Program-made: the position numbers and the translations under genes | In this document: piece by piece, positions 10,086-46,000 of the stretch | Layout: each line of letters opens with the position of its first letter | Position numbering within the stretch: the stretch's first letter is position 1 | Assembly (NCBI GenBank): GCA_977020255.1 | Contig: CDROCS010000410.1 | Coordinates: 124,001-188,000 of the forward strand | Direction: 5' to 3' | From: Obrimoposthia wandeli | Lineage: Eukaryota | Length of the DNA: 64,000 nt | Notes under the pieces: model-generated | Database searches by the model: none | Told to the model about the DNA's origin: nothing | The model's input: only the letters and a program-made list of their open reading frames with translations

Positions 10086-10361
10086 ATGGCAAGTGTGATT
10101 AGTATTTTCAAAAGTAATAATTTAGCTTACATGAGCAAGCTACAGAACGACGATACTAAAGAGCAAAAACTAGCATCGTTCCAGAAACTAGCAATGTCAT
10201 CAAGCGGCATACGCAAAGCACATTTCGAGAATATGCTTAGTAACACCGTTGATGTTGATAGTATTTATTTTGATGGAGAGAACGTAGCAACTCAAGCTGT
10301 CGAAGAAATCATTAAGCAAACGCTAAAATCGACTGGTTTTATCGTACTCTCACACCACTAA
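10086..10361 (+). CDS. Hypothetical protein
   Basis: 91-aa ORF preceded by AAGGGA/GAG; no family recognised. Confidence 0.55.
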   Translation: MASVISIFKSNNLAYMSKLQNDDTKEQKLASFQKLAMSSSGIRKAHFENMLSNTVDVDSIYFDGENVATQAVEEIIKQTLKSTGFIVLSHH

Positions 10362-10415
10362 ATCATCTTTAGGTTACAGTTACTAGCGCCTGACTGTACA
10401 GGATTGTAACCAGCA

Positions 10416-11105
10416 TTAAGACGATTTAAGCCCTGATCTATCCAGGTCTAAGTCTATCCAAGTATAATGCCCTTCACTGTTTAGCTCTCCGGTTTTAATA
10501 TCAATCGGATCTGAAAATAGCGGACTATCAAATACAAAGGTATGGAATTCACCATTTTCACCGCAAGGATCAATACCTTCAGGTAAACTGGCGATAAACG
10601 CGCTATCAAATACTTTACCGACATAATCAACAGATAAGCGGCGTGGGTCTACGCAAGTGACTATTGCCTGCTGACCACCAGCAATCATATCTTTAGCTAA
10701 TTGGGCGGTATCGAGTTCCCACAACGGGAAGATGGCATTAATACCTGTACCAACAAGGTTATTCACCCGGTAGTTTTTAATATCTGCTAAAAACAAATCG
10801 CCATAAGCAAAATTAACCACGTCACGCTGTTTCGCTTTTGCAACAAACGCATCCATGATTGCTTCATATTCAACATTACTGCACGGATATGGAATTTCGA
10901 TAATATCCAAAGGTAAATTCATTGCTGCAGCCTGACGTTGCAACAATTCAATACGCACAGAATGTACTGCAGTACGTTGATACTGAGCATTCACCGAACA
11001 GAAAATACCGACGATTTCGATTGTTGGATCTTGCGCCAATTGCAAGCAAGTCCAAGAAGCATCTTTGCCCGTGCTCCATGAAATTAATGTTTTTTGCTTT
11101 TCCAT
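10416..11105 (-). CDS. DUF71/COG2102 PP-loop ATP-dependent ligase (diphthine-ammonia-ligase-like)
   Basis: SWSTGKDA PP-loop, GDLF, FPLW, DPCGENGEFHTFV. Confidence 0.9.
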   Translation of the reverse strand: MEKQKTLISWSTGKDASWTCLQLAQDPTIEIVGIFCSVNAQYQRTAVHSVRIELLQRQAAAMNLPLDIIEIPYPCSNVEYEAIMDAFVAKAKQRDVVNFAYGDLFLADIKNYRVNNLVGTGINAIFPLWELDTAQLAKDMIAGGQQAIVTCVDPRRLSVDYVGKVFDSAFIASLPEGIDPCGENGEFHTFVFDSPLFSDPIDIKTGELNSEGHYTWIDLDLDRSGLKSS

Positions 11106-11144
11106 AATTTAATCATCCACAACTAAAAATTAACTAGCTTACGT

Positions 11145-11609
11145 TTATTTATAAGCGCAATGACGACAATCATTACCACAACAACGTGCACGTTTTAAAT
11201 GATACCACTCACTAAAAACATAACGGCCATTTTCAATGGTAAAGTCGATATTCTCAACTAATTCTTTTTGATGACGGTACGGTTCAGCAAGGGCCAAACG
11301 TGCTTTGGGCGATCCCGCTGCATTTAGCTGTTTCAAAATTTCAGCACCAATAACCTTGGCTAGACAAGTTTTACACAAGCAGTCACTCAGCGTATCCAAT
11401 GGCATAACAGCCGGTAAATCTTGACACCAACAACCACCCTGCTCGCTTGCCGCGTCTACGCCGCAACCAAATTCAGCTTGGCATTCAGTACATTGTTTTG
11501 CTGCTGGCGCTGCTGGTTCTATTGCTACTGATTCAGCATTTTCTTCGATGTTTACTATTTGTTCTTCAACAACTGACTTCGTCATACGTTCAATATCCAC
11601 GTTATACAT
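11145..11609 (-). CDS. Cysteine-rich CWC + DUF5522 fusion protein (start 11609 or 11585)
   Basis: CTEC..F.CG...CWC...CLCKTC, then ENGRYVF..YHLKRARCCGNDCRHC; 12 Cys; ATG overlaps the upstream stop. Confidence 0.8.
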   Translation of the reverse strand: MYNVDIERMTKSVVEEQIVNIEENAESVAIEPAAPAAKQCTECQAEFGCGVDAASEQGGCWCQDLPAVMPLDTLSDCLCKTCLAKVIGAEILKQLNAAGSPKARLALAEPYRHQKELVENIDFTIENGRYVFSEWYHLKRARCCGNDCRHCAYK

Positions 11610-12417
11610 TTTCGTTGGCGTTCTGCTGTTGCCATGCTTCGATAATCTCAACAAGTTGGTCTAAACCATCCGTTAAAGCAGCAGGACCCGGTTGTAATAT
11701 ATTTGCCGATTTAACTTCAAATAATTGTTCATTTTTCACGGCACTGATCGCATTCCAGCCATCGCGACTAGCTACTTGCTCGGGTTTAAACTTACGCCCA
11801 CACCAAGAACCAATAATAATGTCTGGGTTTGCATCAATCACGATACTTGGATCAGCAATAATACGGTTTTTCGCTAATGACTCTTTGGCTAAATCAGGGA
11901 AACACTCATCACCACCCGCGATTTCAATCAATTCAGAAACCCATTGAATCCCAGACATGAGTGGATCATTCCACAATTCAAAATAGACTTTTGGGCGTTT
12001 ACTGTATTTCGTTGCGTTAAGCTTAATACGCTCAATTTTGCTTTCAATATCAGCTAACCAAATAGCGGCTTTATCAGTAGCCCCGACTAAACTGGCTAAC
12101 ATCATGATCATGTTAAAGACTTCATCAACAGAGCGTTGATTAAAGATATGGACGGCAATACCTTGCTTGATTAATGCACCAGCGATATCTGCTTGAATAT
12201 CAGAAAAACCAAGCACCAAATCAGGTTTTAAATCGAGGATCTTATCTATCTTGGCCGATGTAAATGCAGATACTTTGGGGTGTGCTTGTCGCGCATGTGG
12301 AGGACGAACAGTAAAGCCTGAAATACCAGCAATACGAGACTCTTCGCCCAGTATATACAGCATTTCTGTGGTTTCTTCTGTTAAACAGACAATCCGTTTT
12401 GGGTAATAGTCCTTCAT
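11602..12417 (-). CDS. BtuF-like cobalamin/siderophore-binding-fold protein without a signal peptide
   Basis: PKRIVCLTEETTE, KILDLKPDLV, PKVYFE.W.DPLM, NPDIII.SWCG, QPGP; no hydrophobic N-terminus even from 12492. Confidence 0.85.
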   Translation of the reverse strand: MKDYYPKRIVCLTEETTEMLYILGEESRIAGISGFTVRPPHARQAHPKVSAFTSAKIDKILDLKPDLVLGFSDIQADIAGALIKQGIAVHIFNQRSVDEVFNMIMMLASLVGATDKAAIWLADIESKIERIKLNATKYSKRPKVYFELWNDPLMSGIQWVSELIEIAGGDECFPDLAKESLAKNRIIADPSIVIDANPDIIIGSWCGRKFKPEQVASRDGWNAISAVKNEQLFEVKSANILQPGPAALTDGLDQLVEIIEAWQQQNANENV

Positions 12418-12480
12418 TTTATTTAATCCGTCACTTGACTCTAATAGCGGCAGTATATCTTGTTTATAACAAAGTGAAAA

Positions 12481-12519
12481 CCCAGTAATCATAGGGTTAT
12501 AGCTACCTTGATTACTGGG
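12481..12519 (-). terminator. Intrinsic terminator between chrA and the btuF-like gene
   Basis: CCCAGTAATC...GATTACTGGG stem followed by TTTT on the minus strand. Confidence 0.7.
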
Positions 12520-12528
12520 TGTTTTACA

Positions 12529-13680
12529 TTACAGACCCATCAGATAACCAAAAGCAATAAAGCTAGCAACCACAGCCATAATCGGTAATTTCAATGTGCG
12601 TAGCGCAAAGAAACCAACAATCACCGCTGCCATATCAATCGGATTAATGATTGCAGAAGTGAATACCGGACTGTAAAGCGCCGACATAAGCAAACCAACA
12701 ACCGCTGCATTAATACCCCACACAGCACCCGCTACTTTAGGTTTAGCCGCTAACGACTCCCAAGCACCATGGAAACCTAATACCAGTAAGAAACCCGGTA
12801 AGAAGATAGCAACAGTGGCAATTAATGCACCCATTAATGGTGAGTTCACTAATAAATCAGCACCTAAGAATGCAGACAGTGAGAACATTGGACCCGGTAC
12901 AGCTTGCGCCGCCGCATAACCCATTAAGAAACGGTCAGTATCAATCGCATCACCTAAAGCTTGTTGCAACATAGGTAATACCACATGACCGCCACCAAAC
13001 ACTAAACTACCCGACTGGAAGAAATCAGCAAAGATAGTTAACCAGGCTGGTGAGTTAGTTAATAACGGTAGACCTGCAAACAACACGGCAAAAATAGCCA
13101 GCGGTAAGTAATTAACGCCACCTTTTACAGTTGCTACAGCCGTTGTTTCAGCTGGTTTCTTAAGTTGCATACCCACAATTGCAGCAGCAACCAGTACCAT
13201 CATTTGAGTTAATAAACTCGGCACAAGTAATAGAACAGCCGCAGTCACAACACAAATGGTGACAGTCGTACGTTCTTTACAAAAACCTTTGTACATATTC
13301 AGCGTTGCATCTGCTACAACGACAACCGCTAACAATTTCAGTCCATGGGTAATACTCACTAACCATGCTGCATCTTGTGTTGCGTCTGTTGTTGCTAAGA
13401 TATAGAGCAATAATACCGACGGGAATGTGAACGCGATAAAGGCAGTGAAACCACCGATAACACCCGCACGACGTAAACCGATTGCAAAACCGATCTGACT
13501 TGAACCTGGACCAGGTAAAAACTGGCTTAATGAAATTAACCTTGCATAGCTTTCGCTATCTATCCACTTTAGTTTTTGAACGAATGTTTTCTCGAAATAA
13601 CCGATATGTGCAGCCGGGCCACCAAAACTGATCCACCCCAATGTAAAAAACTGCCAAAATACTTCTAAAACTTGCTTCAT
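12529..13680 (-). CDS. chrA: Chromate efflux transporter (long-chain CHR)
   Basis: Duplicated FGG motifs (SFGGPAAHIG, VFGGGHVVLP), PGP motifs; likely start MKQVLEVF. Confidence 0.92.
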   Translation of the reverse strand: MKQVLEVFWQFFTLGWISFGGPAAHIGYFEKTFVQKLKWIDSESYARLISLSQFLPGPGSSQIGFAIGLRRAGVIGGFTAFIAFTFPSVLLLYILATTDATQDAAWLVSITHGLKLLAVVVVADATLNMYKGFCKERTTVTICVVTAAVLLLVPSLLTQMMVLVAAAIVGMQLKKPAETTAVATVKGGVNYLPLAIFAVLFAGLPLLTNSPAWLTIFADFFQSGSLVFGGGHVVLPMLQQALGDAIDTDRFLMGYAAAQAVPGPMFSLSAFLGADLLVNSPLMGALIATVAIFLPGFLLVLGFHGAWESLAAKPKVAGAVWGINAAVVGLLMSALYSPVFTSAIINPIDMAAVIVGFFALRTLKLPIMAVVASFIAFGYLMGL

Positions 13681-14135
13681 TACTTTGCCTTTTGTAGCTG
13701 TTATGCGATACCAATTTCGCGTCACTATTGTATTTCAGTTTTGTGACAGTTATATGACAAAGGCTAAGGTTAGCAGCAAGTTATATCGTAAAAACCACTT
13801 ATCTTGGTCTCTTTTAAAACAAGTAACTTAATAGTGAGATAATTAACGTTATATCAAGAGCCTGAAACAGATCAATATACCAAAACGGTTATGATCATAT
13901 CGACTCGCTGTATACATGATACAAATGTTAACCAAAAGATCTTATGTGACGCAATGTCGTGAATTGTAAACAAATGAAAACATCCTTTCAATCCAGAACA
14001 ATATAACAAAGAATACCTCAAAAGTGGCAAGTGCAATTATGGGTTAATCATAGCAGCCTACTTAACAATACCAATATATAGCACTTCGTTAACGCCGAAG
14101 CGTTAATTTTCTACATTCAAAAATCGGGATTATCA

Positions 14136-42412: not shown

Positions 42413-45400
42413 CTACATATTGCGACGATATTTCCCCCCAGCTAAATACAACACATCGGTTAACTGAGATAAGCTCGTATAAGGCACCGCATTCATCAGT
42501 ACAGCAAAACTATTATCGCCAGCCAATAAGGCGGTCTTCATCGTGTCCAATGACAATGCAGCCTGCACTTTATGCTGTAGCTTAAACTGTAATACACTGT
42601 CTATTTGTTGCTGCTTTTTAGTTTCACTACAACGCACTAATTCTTTATCGTTTAATCGTGTCGCGTCATGCTGTTCCGTATCTCTGCTCATGCAATTCAC
42701 CCCCACCATATCAAGTTGTGCACTGCCTTTTAATTTTTCATAGTACATACTTTGCTGCTGTATTTGCGTGCGCTGATAACCGGTTTCAATTGCGCCAAGC
42801 ACCCCGCCACGACGGGCTAAACGATTAAACTCACCATAGACGGATTCTTCAACAAGATCGGTTAACTGCTCGATAATGTAACTACCTTGCAAGGGATTTT
42901 GATTTTTATTTAAGCCAAACTCGCGATTAATAATGGATTGAATGGACAGCGCTCGATAGACGGAATTTTCAGTCGGTGTCGTGATCGTTTCATCATAGGC
43001 ATTGGTATGTAAGCTATTGCAGTTATCGCACAACGCATACATAGCTTGTAGACTGGTGCGTATATCATTCAAGTCAATTTCTTGTGATTGCAGACTCCGA
43101 CCGGATGTTTGGATGTGGTACTTTAATTTTTGGCTACGCTCATTGGCCTTATATACCGACTTTAATGTTCGCGACCATATCCGTCGTGCTACGCGCCCTA
43201 TCACTGCATATTCAGGATCCATACCATTACTAAAGAAAAAGCTCAGTCGTGGCGCGACATCATCAATATCCAAACCTTGCGCTAGATAATATTCTAATAG
43301 CGTAAAACCGTTCGCCAATGTAAAGGCAAGTTGCGTGATAGGGTTCGCCCCTGCTTCACCAATGTGATAACCACTCACTGACACGGGATAAAATTTCTCA
43401 ATCGCGTTAGCACTAAAGTAGCCTTGCATATCAGCCATTAGCTTCAGCGAAAAATCTAATGAGAAAATACACTCATTTTGTGCGATCTCTTCTTTTAAAA
43501 TATCAGCTTGCAGCGTACCCCTGACTTTTTGATAGGTAGCGGTTTTCAATAGTGTATATTCAGCCTCTAAGCCAAGTAATTCACTCATTAATACCTGACC
43601 AGAAATGCCCAATAATTTAAGTCCTAGCCCCTCATGCCCTTGAGGTCGCCCCCCACGATACACAGGCCGTTGTTTAGCCGTCATGCCCGCAGAGGTTAAA
43701 TAGCGAGTTATGTGTTTGTTGGCTTTTGACCATAACTTCATTTTGGTTAAATACAGTTCAACTTGTTGATCAATCGCGGTATGTAAAAACCACGCCATAA
43801 GGATGGGTGCAGGGCCATTAATCGTCATAGATACCGACGTGCCGCTATCGCATAGGTCTATGCCTGAATACAGTATTTTCATATCATCAAGCGTTGCAAT
43901 CGACACACCTGACATGCCTATGCAGGCAAACACATCAGGGCTTAAAGCAGGATCGTGACCGTAAAGAGTATTAGGATCAAACGCCGTTGATAATCGAATC
44001 GATTTTTGGCCTTTAATTAAATAATGAAAACGCTTATTGGTATCTTCAGGTAAGCCTTCACCAGCAAACATCCGCGTCGGGTCTTCATCATTATGCCTTT
44101 TAGGGAAAACGCCCGCGGTATAAGGAAACTGTCCAGGGCAATTTTCATTCAGTAAAAAAGCAGTGATATTATCCCAATGCTGCTCATTTGGTTTCACCAC
44201 ATGCGGGACTACTGTACCGCTTAAACTCACAAAGTGGTCTTTATGCTCACCATACGTTTGATGAGAATCGATGGTATCAACCCCCTCTTCAATGCGTTTT
44301 AATGCCAATTCTTCTTCGTCTCTAAACCAAGCCAATAACGCATGCCTAAGTGGCACAGACAGCTTAGTTAAAAGTTTGTTATAACGTGCCCGTAACGGCG
44401 GTAAGATCATTTTTAGCGAAGCATCGGTAACTAAAAAACTGTGCTCATCAGATTCATTGGCTATATCGGCTTGTGGGTAGCGCCCTAGTTTAGTCGGTAA
44501 ACAAGGATCACCGAGATCAGCTAACACTTGATAACAACTATGCAATTCCCGAACTTGTGCTATTTGCTGCGCATTCGTATCGCTTAATTTTTGGTAATGG
44601 TTATAGATCCGCGTTAAATAATCCGGATGTTGTAAATTTAACTGACTTGCGGATAGTGTCCAATCATAACGGGGATAACGAGTGAGTACTTGCTGGTATA
44701 TTTTTTCAATATTAGGCTGTGTTGAAAAAGGTAACTTAGTGCCATATTTGGCCTTAAATTCGAACATCAAAAATGCGATAAATCGATTAAAACCATGATC
44801 GTCATAGTGGCTTGCTACCATAGGGAAAACAGGCGGTTCATTACGAACAGAACCTTTTACTTGCTGATTATTTTTTCCTTGTTGATTAAAACGCCATTGT
44901 TGTTGCACGTCATTAAACGCATCTTCACTGCCTTGTTGATCGGCTTTATTCAGCACCACAGCATCGGCATACTGTAACATCTCAATTTTTTCTAGCTGAC
45001 TACTGGCACCATAATCCTTGGTCATGAGATAAAGGCTAAAATCAACCATATCAACTATCGCACTGTCACTTTGACCAATACCTGCTGTTTCAATTAATAC
45101 CAGATCAAAACCTTGATTAATCAATAGCGGCACACAGGTTTGTAATGACTGACTGATCGAGACATTGGCTTGTCGCGTTGCTATCGACCGCATGAATAAC
45201 CGATCGTGCGGGAAGGTGTTTATACGAATCCGATCACCGAGCAAAGCCCCACCGGTTTTTTGAGCACTGGGGTCAACCGCTAAATAGGCAATCTTCATAT
45301 CAGGATAAAGCTGTAATAATGCCGCTAATAACTCATCAATAAAGGTACTTTTACCCGCACCGCCTGTGCCTGTGATCCCCATCACCACACTTTTTTTCAC

Positions 45401-46000
45401 ACCTTCGACGTTCGGTGACAATACAGGATCGACACTGGCTTTACGGTTATCACTAACCATACTATTCGTCGTTAATCGATCTTGCTCGATAGCCGTGATT
45501 AACTGTCCCAGATATAAATCAGTAGCAGGTTTTCTGGTTAATTTTTTAAGCTTAAATTTTGCGGTCGTTTTAGGTTTAACAGCGATTAAACGGGTTAATA
45601 AATCACTTATCATCTCGTCTAAACTCAGTACATCATCACTGGTATAAACGCGTGTAATACCTTCTGCTTCTAATCTTCTCGCTTCAGTTGCGGAAATAGT
45701 GGCACCGCCGCCAACGAATATTGCTGGTTTAGCCCCGACTTCGGCCAGACTAGATAGTAAATAACCGAAATAAGCATCATGCCCACCTTGATAGGAACTC
45801 ATCGCAATGGCATCTACGTCTTCTTGTAATGCGGCTGTCACCACATCATGCACTGAGCGGTTAATGCCTAGATGAATAACTTCAACGCCTCGCGCTTGTA
45901 ATAACCGTCGTACAATATTAATTGCCGCGTCATGACCATCAAACAGACAGGTCGCGGTTAAAATGCGTAAGGGGAATTTAGTTGAAGTCGTTTTCATCAC
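42413..46000 (-). CDS. icmF: Fused isobutyryl-CoA mutase IcmF (B12 domain - MeaB G-protein - mutase)
   Basis: FDGHDAAINI (DxH B12 ligand), SSYQGGH, GTGGAGKS, ETAGIGQ, NKAD, EDPTRMFAGEG (Phe at the specificity site), QADILKE, C-terminal YRRNM. Confidence 0.92.
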   Translation of the reverse strand: MMKTTSTKFPLRILTATCLFDGHDAAINIVRRLLQARGVEVIHLGINRSVHDVVTAALQEDVDAIAMSSYQGGHDAYFGYLLSSLAEVGAKPAIFVGGGATISATEARRLEAEGITRVYTSDDVLSLDEMISDLLTRLIAVKPKTTAKFKLKKLTRKPATDLYLGQLITAIEQDRLTTNSMVSDNRKASVDPVLSPNVEGVKKSVVMGITGTGGAGKSTFIDELLAALLQLYPDMKIAYLAVDPSAQKTGGALLGDRIRINTFPHDRLFMRSIATRQANVSISQSLQTCVPLLINQGFDLVLIETAGIGQSDSAIVDMVDFSLYLMTKDYGASSQLEKIEMLQYADAVVLNKADQQGSEDAFNDVQQQWRFNQQGKNNQQVKGSVRNEPPVFPMVASHYDDHGFNRFIAFLMFEFKAKYGTKLPFSTQPNIEKIYQQVLTRYPRYDWTLSASQLNLQHPDYLTRIYNHYQKLSDTNAQQIAQVRELHSCYQVLADLGDPCLPTKLGRYPQADIANESDEHSFLVTDASLKMILPPLRARYNKLLTKLSVPLRHALLAWFRDEEELALKRIEEGVDTIDSHQTYGEHKDHFVSLSGTVVPHVVKPNEQHWDNITAFLLNENCPGQFPYTAGVFPKRHNDEDPTRMFAGEGLPEDTNKRFHYLIKGQKSIRLSTAFDPNTLYGHDPALSPDVFACIGMSGVSIATLDDMKILYSGIDLCDSGTSVSMTINGPAPILMAWFLHTAIDQQVELYLTKMKLWSKANKHITRYLTSAGMTAKQRPVYRGGRPQGHEGLGLKLLGISGQVLMSELLGLEAEYTLLKTATYQKVRGTLQADILKEEIAQNECIFSLDFSLKLMADMQGYFSANAIEKFYPVSVSGYHIGEAGANPITQLAFTLANGFTLLEYYLAQGLDIDDVAPRLSFFFSNGMDPEYAVIGRVARRIWSRTLKSVYKANERSQKLKYHIQTSGRSLQSQEIDLNDIRTSLQAMYALCDNCNSLHTNAYDETITTPTENSVYRALSIQSIINREFGLNKNQNPLQGSYIIEQLTDLVEESVYGEFNRLARRGGVLGAIETGYQRTQIQQQSMYYEKLKGSAQLDMVGVNCMSRDTEQHDATRLNDKELVRCSETKKQQQIDSVLQFKLQHKVQAALSLDTMKTALLAGDNSFAVLMNAVPYTSLSQLTDVLYLAGGKYRRNM

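Follow-up and report, generated by a model that had tools for sequence, protein, structure and literature searches.

What might a protein with the fold of BtuF, the binding protein of the BtuCD-F importer, do if it never leaves the cytoplasm, and what ties its gene to one for a PP-loop ATP pyrophosphatase of the DUF71/COG2102 family? The question is raised by three linked minus-strand genes in a 64,000-nucleotide stretch of DNA (positions 124,001 to 188,000 of contig CDROCS010000410.1, assembly GCA_977020255.1, filed under Obrimoposthia wandeli), to which we refer throughout as the window. The contig is bacterial, its encoded proteins being 79-97% identical to Moritella proteins; it does not resemble human DNA, and no runs of N come into play. 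The three genes code for a BtuF-like protein of 271 residues (11602-12417; Peripla_BP_2, PF01497, 156 bits in Pfam), a Pfam-defined fusion of Cys_rich_CWC and DUF5522 domains (11145-11609; 154 residues from the ATG at 11609 or 146 from the ATG at 11585) and a DUF71/COG2102 PP-loop ATP pyrophosphatase of 229 residues (10416-11105; PF01902, 85.6 bits against a cut-off of 23.2). A first-pass annotation, made from the letters of the sequence, had read this trio as one cytoplasmic module that repairs or remodels scavenged corrinoids. We put at about even the chances that this locus represents, in Moritella, a widespread intracellular corrinoid-processing pair, consisting of the BtuF-like and DUF71 proteins, with the cysteine-rich protein as a looser third partner.

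A BtuF-like protein and its DUF71 neighbor

The BtuF-like protein belongs to a family of about 266-271 residues that carries the NCBI name 'cobalamin-binding protein'. The window member shares 97% of its residues with a Moritella marina protein and 64-72% with members from Bacteroidota, Acidiferrobacterales, Xanthomonadales and other groups; among the orthologues in the loci fetched for comparison identity reaches down to 51%, and a family alignment of 52 sequences has a mean column identity of 71%, with C11 and C206 invariant. The first beta-strand begins at residue 8 and therefore leaves no room for a signal peptide or a lipobox, in agreement with the first-pass annotation, and neither the window protein nor any of the orthologues examined was found to have a signal peptide. 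Furthermore, several of these signal-less orthologues have stop codons only 4-19 codons upstream of the first strand, so that no start can add a signal peptide. A longer reading frame from an ATG at 12492 in the window was considered and rejected, as that ATG lies inside the hairpin following the upstream gene chrA and is lost in four of nine Moritella genomes; the ATG at 12417 and its upstream region are invariant across the Moritella alignment.

The AlphaFold2 model of the protein (predicted local distance difference test, pLDDT, 89) displays the class III binding-protein fold and is matched by BtuF structures with a template modeling score (TM) of about 0.7. The two-lobed architecture is that of BtuF (1N4A, 5YSC), the relationship to which is recovered by sequence and profile comparisons with E-values of about 1e-12 to 1e-15, and the invariant F52 is an aromatic residue that aligns with the site altered in the W66 variants of E. 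coli BtuF (5M2Q, 5M34). Unlike BtuF, the window protein has no signal peptide, shares only about 20% identity with it, reaches 48.7 bits against the cut-off of 234 of the BtuF equivalog NF002894, and is not encoded beside btuCD; its family is also far more conserved across phyla than the binding proteins of transporters and has invariant cysteines. We discarded the fold as a means of choosing the ligand, binders of B12, heme and siderophores scoring alike, and because the fold does not discriminate we base the assignment to corrinoids on genomic context.

The DUF71 protein retains the PP-loop (WSTGKDAS), whose S11, G13, K14 and D15 recur in every one of 81 homologues, and has at residues 179-188 the motif DPCGENGEFH, whose ENGEFH core is likewise invariant in 81 of 81. 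An ENGEF/YH signature separates the DUF71-B12 subgroup, defined in 2012 by de Crecy-Lagard et al., from Dph6 enzymes, which have EGGE/DxE (PMC3541065). By this signature the window protein is a member of the DUF71-B12 subgroup; its score with the Dph6 equivalog TIGR03679, 67.9 bits, does not reach the cut-off of 197.3, and bacteria lack diphthamide (PMC3541065). With Dph6 (3RK1, 2D13) it shares the PP-loop ATP pyrophosphatase fold and the P-loop, and because of this shared fold a chemistry of adenylation followed by amidation would be expected. It differs from Dph6 in having DPCGENGEFH in place of AGEGGEFE and in four cysteines, C20, C75, C151 and C181, which at least 95% of the 81 homologues retain and which are lacking in the aligned structures of Dph6 type (2D13 and 3RJZ). 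Of the four, one sits within DPCGENGEFH, and a subgroup-specific site for a metal or a cluster could be built from them. The replacement of glutamate by histidine in the motif and the four subgroup cysteines caution that the reaction of this enzyme may be a different one.

We then examined the gene neighborhoods of 80 DUF71 homologues from many phyla. A Peripla_BP_2 gene is found nearby in 19 of these loci, and in at least 13 of the 19 a gene for a binding protein that lacks an export signal stands directly beside the DUF71 gene; the binding proteins fall into two distinct clades. The same operons also carry a separate, exported BtuF with a signal peptide or lipobox, along with BtuC, BtuD, a TonB receptor and BtuR or PduO adenosyltransferases, and other common neighbors are TonB-dependent receptors, FecCD, ATP-binding cassette (ABC) ATPases, DUF6580 proteins and corrinoid adenosyltransferases. 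A cobalamin riboswitch heads ten of the 15 DUF71 loci scanned for it, including five of the six with a close orthologue of the BtuF-like protein. In Porticoccaceae, for example, the order is riboswitch, receptor, DUF71, binding protein, btuR, btuC, btuD and btuF, and in Acidobacteriota it is riboswitch, btuD, btuC, btuF, DUF71 and the BtuF-like orthologue. At the window locus itself the only B12-type neighbor of the DUF71 gene is the BtuF-like gene, the wider clustering, in btu/btuR operons under riboswitch control, being seen in related loci.

Neighborhoods centered on the BtuF-like family (75 loci) tell a similar story. TonB receptors lie nearby in 20 of them, cobB in 15 (mostly directly upstream), cobQ in 11, an ABC ATPase in ten, cbiB in nine (directly downstream), FecCD in nine, bluB and btuR in eight each, and cobU in five; the CobB, CobQ and BluB neighbors were confirmed with curated equivalog models. 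The two families also occur as one chain: a 487-residue protein of an acidobacterium (locus L065) is an in-frame fusion of DUF71 (PF01902, residues 1-204) to a BtuF-like domain (PF01497, residues 233-459), and a 61-member bacterial cluster in the ESM Atlas has the same DUF71 plus Peripla_BP_2 architecture. In a further protein (P0394) a BtuF-like part is followed by a GNAT acetyltransferase domain. In light of the riboswitch operons and the cob-cluster neighbors identified with curated models, the assignment of the BtuF-like and DUF71 proteins to corrinoid metabolism, as advanced in the first-pass annotation, is supported. An intracellular location of the BtuF-like protein is similarly supported by the missing export signals across the orthologues, the fusions, and the separate exported BtuF encoded in the same operons. 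On the basis of this contextual information we propose that the BtuF-like protein is a candidate cytoplasmic corrinoid carrier.

Several side observations were made in these neighborhoods. The second clade of signal-less Peripla_BP_2 proteins, which abuts DUF71 in riboswitch operons (L038:10675-11589, L075:9042-9986, L085:7424-8362, and loci L031 and L073), is about 24% identical to the window BtuF-like protein and begins with M-KIVSLLPSATE, followed further on by SHECD. DUF6580 proteins of about 180 residues are encoded directly upstream of DUF71 in six loci, including L068:9456-9998, L039:4638-5180, L069:7459-8001, L028 and L046, in some of which a cobalamin riboswitch or the gene of a PduO-type adenosyltransferase comes first, giving this uncharacterized family a B12 context. 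Finally, an open reading frame of 191 codons without a Pfam or NCBIfam match lies between a cobalamin riboswitch and cobB (L107:11066-11641, minus strand), and five loci have similar frames upstream of their BtuF-like gene.

The cysteine-rich CWC/DUF5522 protein

The first-pass annotation had described the middle protein of the trio as a fusion of two cysteine-rich domains with 12 cysteines, and this description holds. The window protein scores 55.4 bits with DUF5522 (PF17653; cut-off 25) and 21.3 bits with Cys_rich_CWC (PF14375), which is below the cut-off of 24, a threshold passed by its orthologue at locus L107 with 31.6 bits. It has exactly 12 cysteines, eight of them in the N-terminal domain and the others in a C-terminal CCx3Cx2C motif, and in an alignment of 63 sequences all are conserved, ten being invariant and two present in at least 90%. 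At E<=1e-3 the family comprises 889 representative clusters, whose proteins mostly have both domains and a length of some 110-130 residues. The window protein probably binds metal. Its AlphaFold2 model (pLDDT 85) retrieved nothing at E<=0.001 in a Foldseek search of the Protein Data Bank (PDB); VIA-align, run against 48,161 chains, reached a Z of at most 3.3, its zinc-finger-like matches being scattered and not significant, and a sequence search of the PDB found no match. A match of the CWC domain in the Atlas to a cluster of 330-residue 'cobalamin-binding proteins' from Verrucomicrobiota was weak (TM 0.37).

The link between this protein and the other two is real, and the partnership is a loose, facultative one. 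Beyond Moritella, the gene adjoins that of the BtuF-like protein at a locus (L118) where the two products are 70% and 50% identical, respectively, to those of the window, and at locus L107 of genome G121, where the corresponding values are 53% and 49%, it closes a run of cobalamin riboswitch, the 191-codon frame, cobB, BtuF-like gene and CWC/DUF5522 gene. In a sample of 301 genomes from the taxonomic order, all ten genomes that have both the BtuF-like and the cysteine-rich gene have them adjacent; 17 of 27 genomes with DUF5522 are without a BtuF-like orthologue. A comparable arrangement is known from Sulfurospirillum, where a 'cysteine-rich CWC protein' (SMUL_1567) is encoded directly after cbiA in a co-induced norcobamide cluster (PMC7755780), recalling the succession of cobB, BtuF-like and CWC/DUF5522 genes at L107; SMUL_1567 is likened to the window protein by annotation and gene position. 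Searching the ESM Atlas with the DUF71::BtuF-like fusion also returned two eukaryotic clusters of proteins of about 700 residues, one from Oomycota (58 members; DUF5522 in 100%, Peripla_BP_2 in 93%, Diphthami_syn_2_N in 17%) and one from diatoms (220 members; 100%, 75% and 11%, respectively), at a similarity of 0.89, which is under the tool's trust line. As a lead, this cluster annotation suggests a fusion of all three domains in diatoms and oomycetes.

The locus and its host in Moritella

The trio is preceded by chrA, a chromate transporter gene transcribed in the same direction (12529-13725, minus strand, 224 bits), and the order chrA, BtuF-like, cysteine-rich protein, DUF71 is kept in nine of nine intact Moritella genomes. 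As the first-pass annotation had it, the three genes are tightly linked and stand behind a putative terminator. The ATG of the cysteine-rich gene at 11609 overlaps the stop codon of the BtuF-like gene (ATGTATAA), the alternative start at 11585, 24 nucleotides downstream, being equally possible, and a gap of 39 bp separates this gene from DUF71. Directly 3' of the chrA stop codon is a hairpin with a T-rich tail (12471-12520, minus strand; 11-bp arms at 12520-12510 and 12490-12480), which folds with -22 kcal/mol (z = -4.39, with none of 200 shuffles equally stable). Its arms are conserved, and in some Moritella genomes they carry substitutions that pair up, a pattern compatible with covariation; thus, it probably ends chrA transcription and sets the trio apart from chrA. 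We rejected chrA as a member of the module on account of this separation and the lack of any chrA gene near either family outside Moritella (0 of 155 loci).

A consensus scan placed a promoter-like site (TTTTCA, 17 nucleotides, TATACT) at 12452-12480 on the minus strand. Its -10 region falls inside a 17-nucleotide block, TATAAACAAGATATACT (12468-12452), that is invariant in an intergenic alignment of ten Moritella sequences with varying flanks. The block is longer than a -10 box requires and may also serve as an operator. Among the contigs assembled from two marine metatranscriptome runs of one study, one piece covers 10300-11774 and another 11807-12433; contig ends fall at 12432/12433, just 3' of the block, and coverage over chrA is sparse. 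These contigs are weak evidence, compatible with a single transcript that starts near the promoter block and runs through the trio, and, representing the run depth only as contigs, they cannot prove transcription or operon structure. A cobalamin riboswitch was considered at the locus and rejected: no Rfam family matched anywhere in the window, no riboswitch was found at the Moritella sp. 5 locus (L009) or in the closest Moritella genome (G105), and the leader 5' of the BtuF-like gene is too short for one, in agreement with the Rfam result.

The absence of a permease gene nearby, likewise part of the first-pass description, extends to the whole window, in which no FecCD permease, BtuB-type receptor, cobB, cbiB or btuR was found. 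The window does contain, 30 kb from the trio, a gene for an adenosylcobalamin-dependent enzyme, an IcmF-type fused isobutyryl-CoA mutase/GTPase of 1195 residues (42413-46000, minus strand, 1250 bits). Searching four Moritella genomes for B12 genes, we found MetH in all those tested, as well as the IcmF-type mutase and btuR; the co-occurrence with B12 enzymes for which the first-pass annotation had proposed to look is therefore seen both in the window and in its relatives. Moritella also has a bona fide CobQ (546 bits against a cut-off of 273) and a 314-residue CobD_CbiB-family protein (70-83 bits against a cut-off of 34), the latter in the same genomes in which no CobS or CobU was detected. 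CobS and CobU were found in none of the four Moritella genomes, both being found in G121 and in control genomes, and CbiZ was found in none of five genomes searched, the family being detected in controls. As a side observation, the stand-alone CobQ (L192:3867-5270 in G105) and the CbiB-family gene make up a partial corrinoid pathway.

Further side observations concern the DNA around the locus and its source. In three Moritella-like genomes, internal deletions have reduced the BtuF-like gene to remnants (L196:7181-7527, L197:8877-9105 and L198:7443-7619) that remain in place, flanked by chrA and the cysteine-rich gene, both of which are intact. The source assembly amounts to 1.35 Gb in 6912 contigs with many bacterial pieces among them. 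DUF5522 and DUF71 match it nine times each, on different contigs, and on contig C506 (6396-7212) there is a second Moritella-like pair of DUF71 and cysteine-rich genes.

Proposed reaction and rival explanations

Given the genomic contexts of the two families and the predicted chemistry of the PP-loop fold, we propose that the signal-less BtuF-fold protein would hold a corrinoid in the cytoplasm and hand it over to enzymes, among which DUF71-B12 would use ATP to adenylate a side-chain carboxylate of the corrinoid, with ammonia or an amine then displacing AMP to leave an amide. Such an enzyme would form rather than hydrolyze amide bonds, and 'amidase', the word chosen in the first-pass annotation, is the wrong term for it. 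The reaction type is that of CobB/CbiA and CobQ/CbiP, which amidate corrin carboxylates in an ATP-dependent manner, and the idea of amidation or repair agrees with the frequency of CobB and CobQ among the neighbors of the putative carrier. CobB and CobQ belong to a fold family unrelated to that of DUF71 (CbiA + GATase_3), use glutamine and release ADP, whereas AMP and pyrophosphate would be expected from DUF71, which lacks a glutaminase domain. As neither CobS nor CobU was found in Moritella, the nucleotide loop cannot be rebuilt there, and what the enzyme acts on in these bacteria should accordingly be a cobamide taken up from outside and complete except for an amide, or else a late corrinoid lacking one. 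We regard side-chain amidation of complete corrinoids, the simplest reaction for a corrinoid bound to the carrier, as probably the reaction concerned; candidate substrates would be B12 that has lost an amide spontaneously and sea-water corrinoids whose amidation is incomplete, and the product would supply MetH and the adenosylcobalamin-dependent IcmF. The CWC/DUF5522 protein would be a metal-binding accessory, with zinc or an iron-sulfur cluster, that is tied to the binding protein, dispensable for the pair in most organisms, and probably endowed with a role of its own besides.

A number of observations weigh against this proposal. In the DUF71 motif the catalytic glutamate of Dph6 is replaced by histidine, which hints at a changed reaction, and amide formation is thus not assured. 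The DUF71 homologues of Aeromonas and Oceanisphaera do not adjoin B12 genes, and the locus has no riboswitch in the window or in the closest Moritella genome. For the third partner, a hidden Markov model search of the 80 DUF71 loci and the remaining BtuF-like loci found neither a CWC nor a DUF5522 domain, and most CWC/DUF5522 genes lie in unrelated contexts, for instance beside deformylase, RNase Y or defense genes. Moreover, the trio is dispensable in Moritella-like genomes: in G006 and G083 the BtuF-like gene is in fragments and the cysteine-rich and DUF71 genes are intact, in G144 a BtuF-like fragment and the cysteine-rich gene remain and DUF71 is lost, and at L010, and likewise at L011, the cysteine-rich gene is the sole survivor, beside an AAA_33-family neighbor that in Moritella sp. 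5 lies upstream of chrA. From this stepwise loss it follows that the module can be dispensed with, that DUF71 persists without the carrier, and that the cysteine-rich protein has a value of its own. Several of these points speak for an explanation under which only the BtuF-like and DUF71 proteins form a functional pair and the cysteine-rich gene is a chance resident between them in Moritella: it is missing from the DUF71 loci and the other BtuF-like loci, it stands by itself at the same site in two genomes and outlasts the loss of its neighbors in a third, its relatives sit beside unrelated genes, and the majority of DUF5522 genomes in the order sample have no BtuF-like orthologue. We nonetheless consider chance residence unlikely, as the adjacency of the two genes holds in every order-sample genome with both, recurs at L118 and, at identities of about one half, in the riboswitch-cobB operon of G121, and has a counterpart behind cbiA in Sulfurospirillum; the coding regions overlap or almost abut in the window, and the eukaryotic clusters, as a lead, point the same way. 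The opposite extreme, that the trio is one corrinoid repair or finishing system of carrier, metal-cluster module and ATP- and ammonia-dependent ligase, carrying out an as yet unnamed cobamide step and joined in diatoms and oomycetes into a single three-domain chain of about 700 residues, is possible but doubtful. The single module of the first-pass annotation is thus partly supported, for the BtuF-like and DUF71 pair but not for the cysteine-rich gene as an obligate member.

For the pair itself, the explanation in print is that of de Crecy-Lagard et al., with whose DUF71-B12 subgroup the window protein shares the Pfam family, the ENGEF/YH signature, a BtuF-type neighbor and a host in which no CbiZ was found. 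The paper counts the neighbors as transport genes (btuCDF) and proposes a CbiZ-like salvage of pseudo-B12, in which DUF71-B12 would replace CbiZ in removing, or helping to replace, the lower-ligand arm of pseudo-B12 or cobinamide, the resulting cobyric acid would be rebuilt by CbiB, CobU and CobS, and the BtuF-like protein would be a part of uptake. This account draws on a strict anti-correlation of DUF71-B12 and CbiZ in bacteria and on clustering with btuCDF and cbiB (PMC3541065), and fits the missing CbiZ and the CbiB-family gene of Moritella as well as the btuR and transport genes in several DUF71 operons. For the present locus we hold it to be improbable: its neighbor bears no export signal where related operons encode a separate exported BtuF, btuCD, cbiB and a riboswitch are absent, and with no CobS or CobU found in the four Moritella genomes the product could not be rebuilt and the published route cannot operate there; a PP-loop ligase acting as a hydrolase would also be chemically unusual, as a reviewer remarked in the same paper. 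A non-corrinoid ligand, such as heme, a siderophore or another metal chelate, with DUF71 acting on a different carboxylate and ChrA hinting at metal or oxyanion handling, would be compatible with the predicted fold, which fits heme, B12 and siderophore binders equally well (the heme binders ShuT, RhuT, BhuT and IsdE and the siderophore binder CeuE match it as well as BtuF does), with the fact that no NCBIfam equivalog is reached, and with the presence of chrA upstream in every Moritella genome. As chrA is set off by its hairpin and unlinked to either family outside Moritella, and as the context of both families elsewhere is specifically one of cobalamin (riboswitches, cobB, cobQ, cbiB, cobU, bluB and btuR), we judge this very improbable. 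Export of the binding protein, whether non-classical or from a start that went unrecognized, which would make it an ordinary uptake accessory of a distant BtuCD, is extremely improbable: the Peripla_BP_2 fold is otherwise almost always extracytoplasmic and Moritella must import B12, but the stop codons shortly upstream of the first strand in several orthologues, the poor conservation of the upstream ATG, the presence of a separate signal-peptide BtuF in the operons, and the in-frame position of the domain behind an ATP-dependent DUF71 enzyme or before a GNAT domain all speak against it.

Returning to the proposed intracellular pair of corrinoid carrier and DUF71-B12 ligase with its looser partner, a literature search on DUF5522, on BtuF-like or cytoplasmic BtuF proteins and on newer DUF71 work yielded nothing beyond the 2012 paper (PMC3541065), and bacterial DUF71-B12 has been a 'missing function' since then, no later paper resolving it having been found in the literature searched. 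Relative to that literature, four elements appear to be new, namely a dedicated and conserved cytoplasmic BtuF-fold partner, the fusions of BtuF-like domains to DUF71 and GNAT, the occurrence of the pair in hosts where no CobS or CobU was found, and a recurrent, facultative CWC/DUF5522 companion. A cytoplasmic member of a fold regarded as periplasmic, conserved at 54-72% identity across phyla, is notable by itself. If the partner of DUF71 is an intracellular BtuF-fold protein rather than a part of a transporter, it would offer a direct handle on the substrate, and the presence of the pair in hosts lacking detectable CobS and CobU argues against the sole published hypothesis and points to chemistry at the corrin side chains.

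Diatoms and oomycetes use B12, cannot make it, and have no periplasm. Should the annotation of their clusters prove true, it would be the strongest argument for the trio as one system, and a B12-processing step would reach into ecologically important, B12-dependent eukaryotes.

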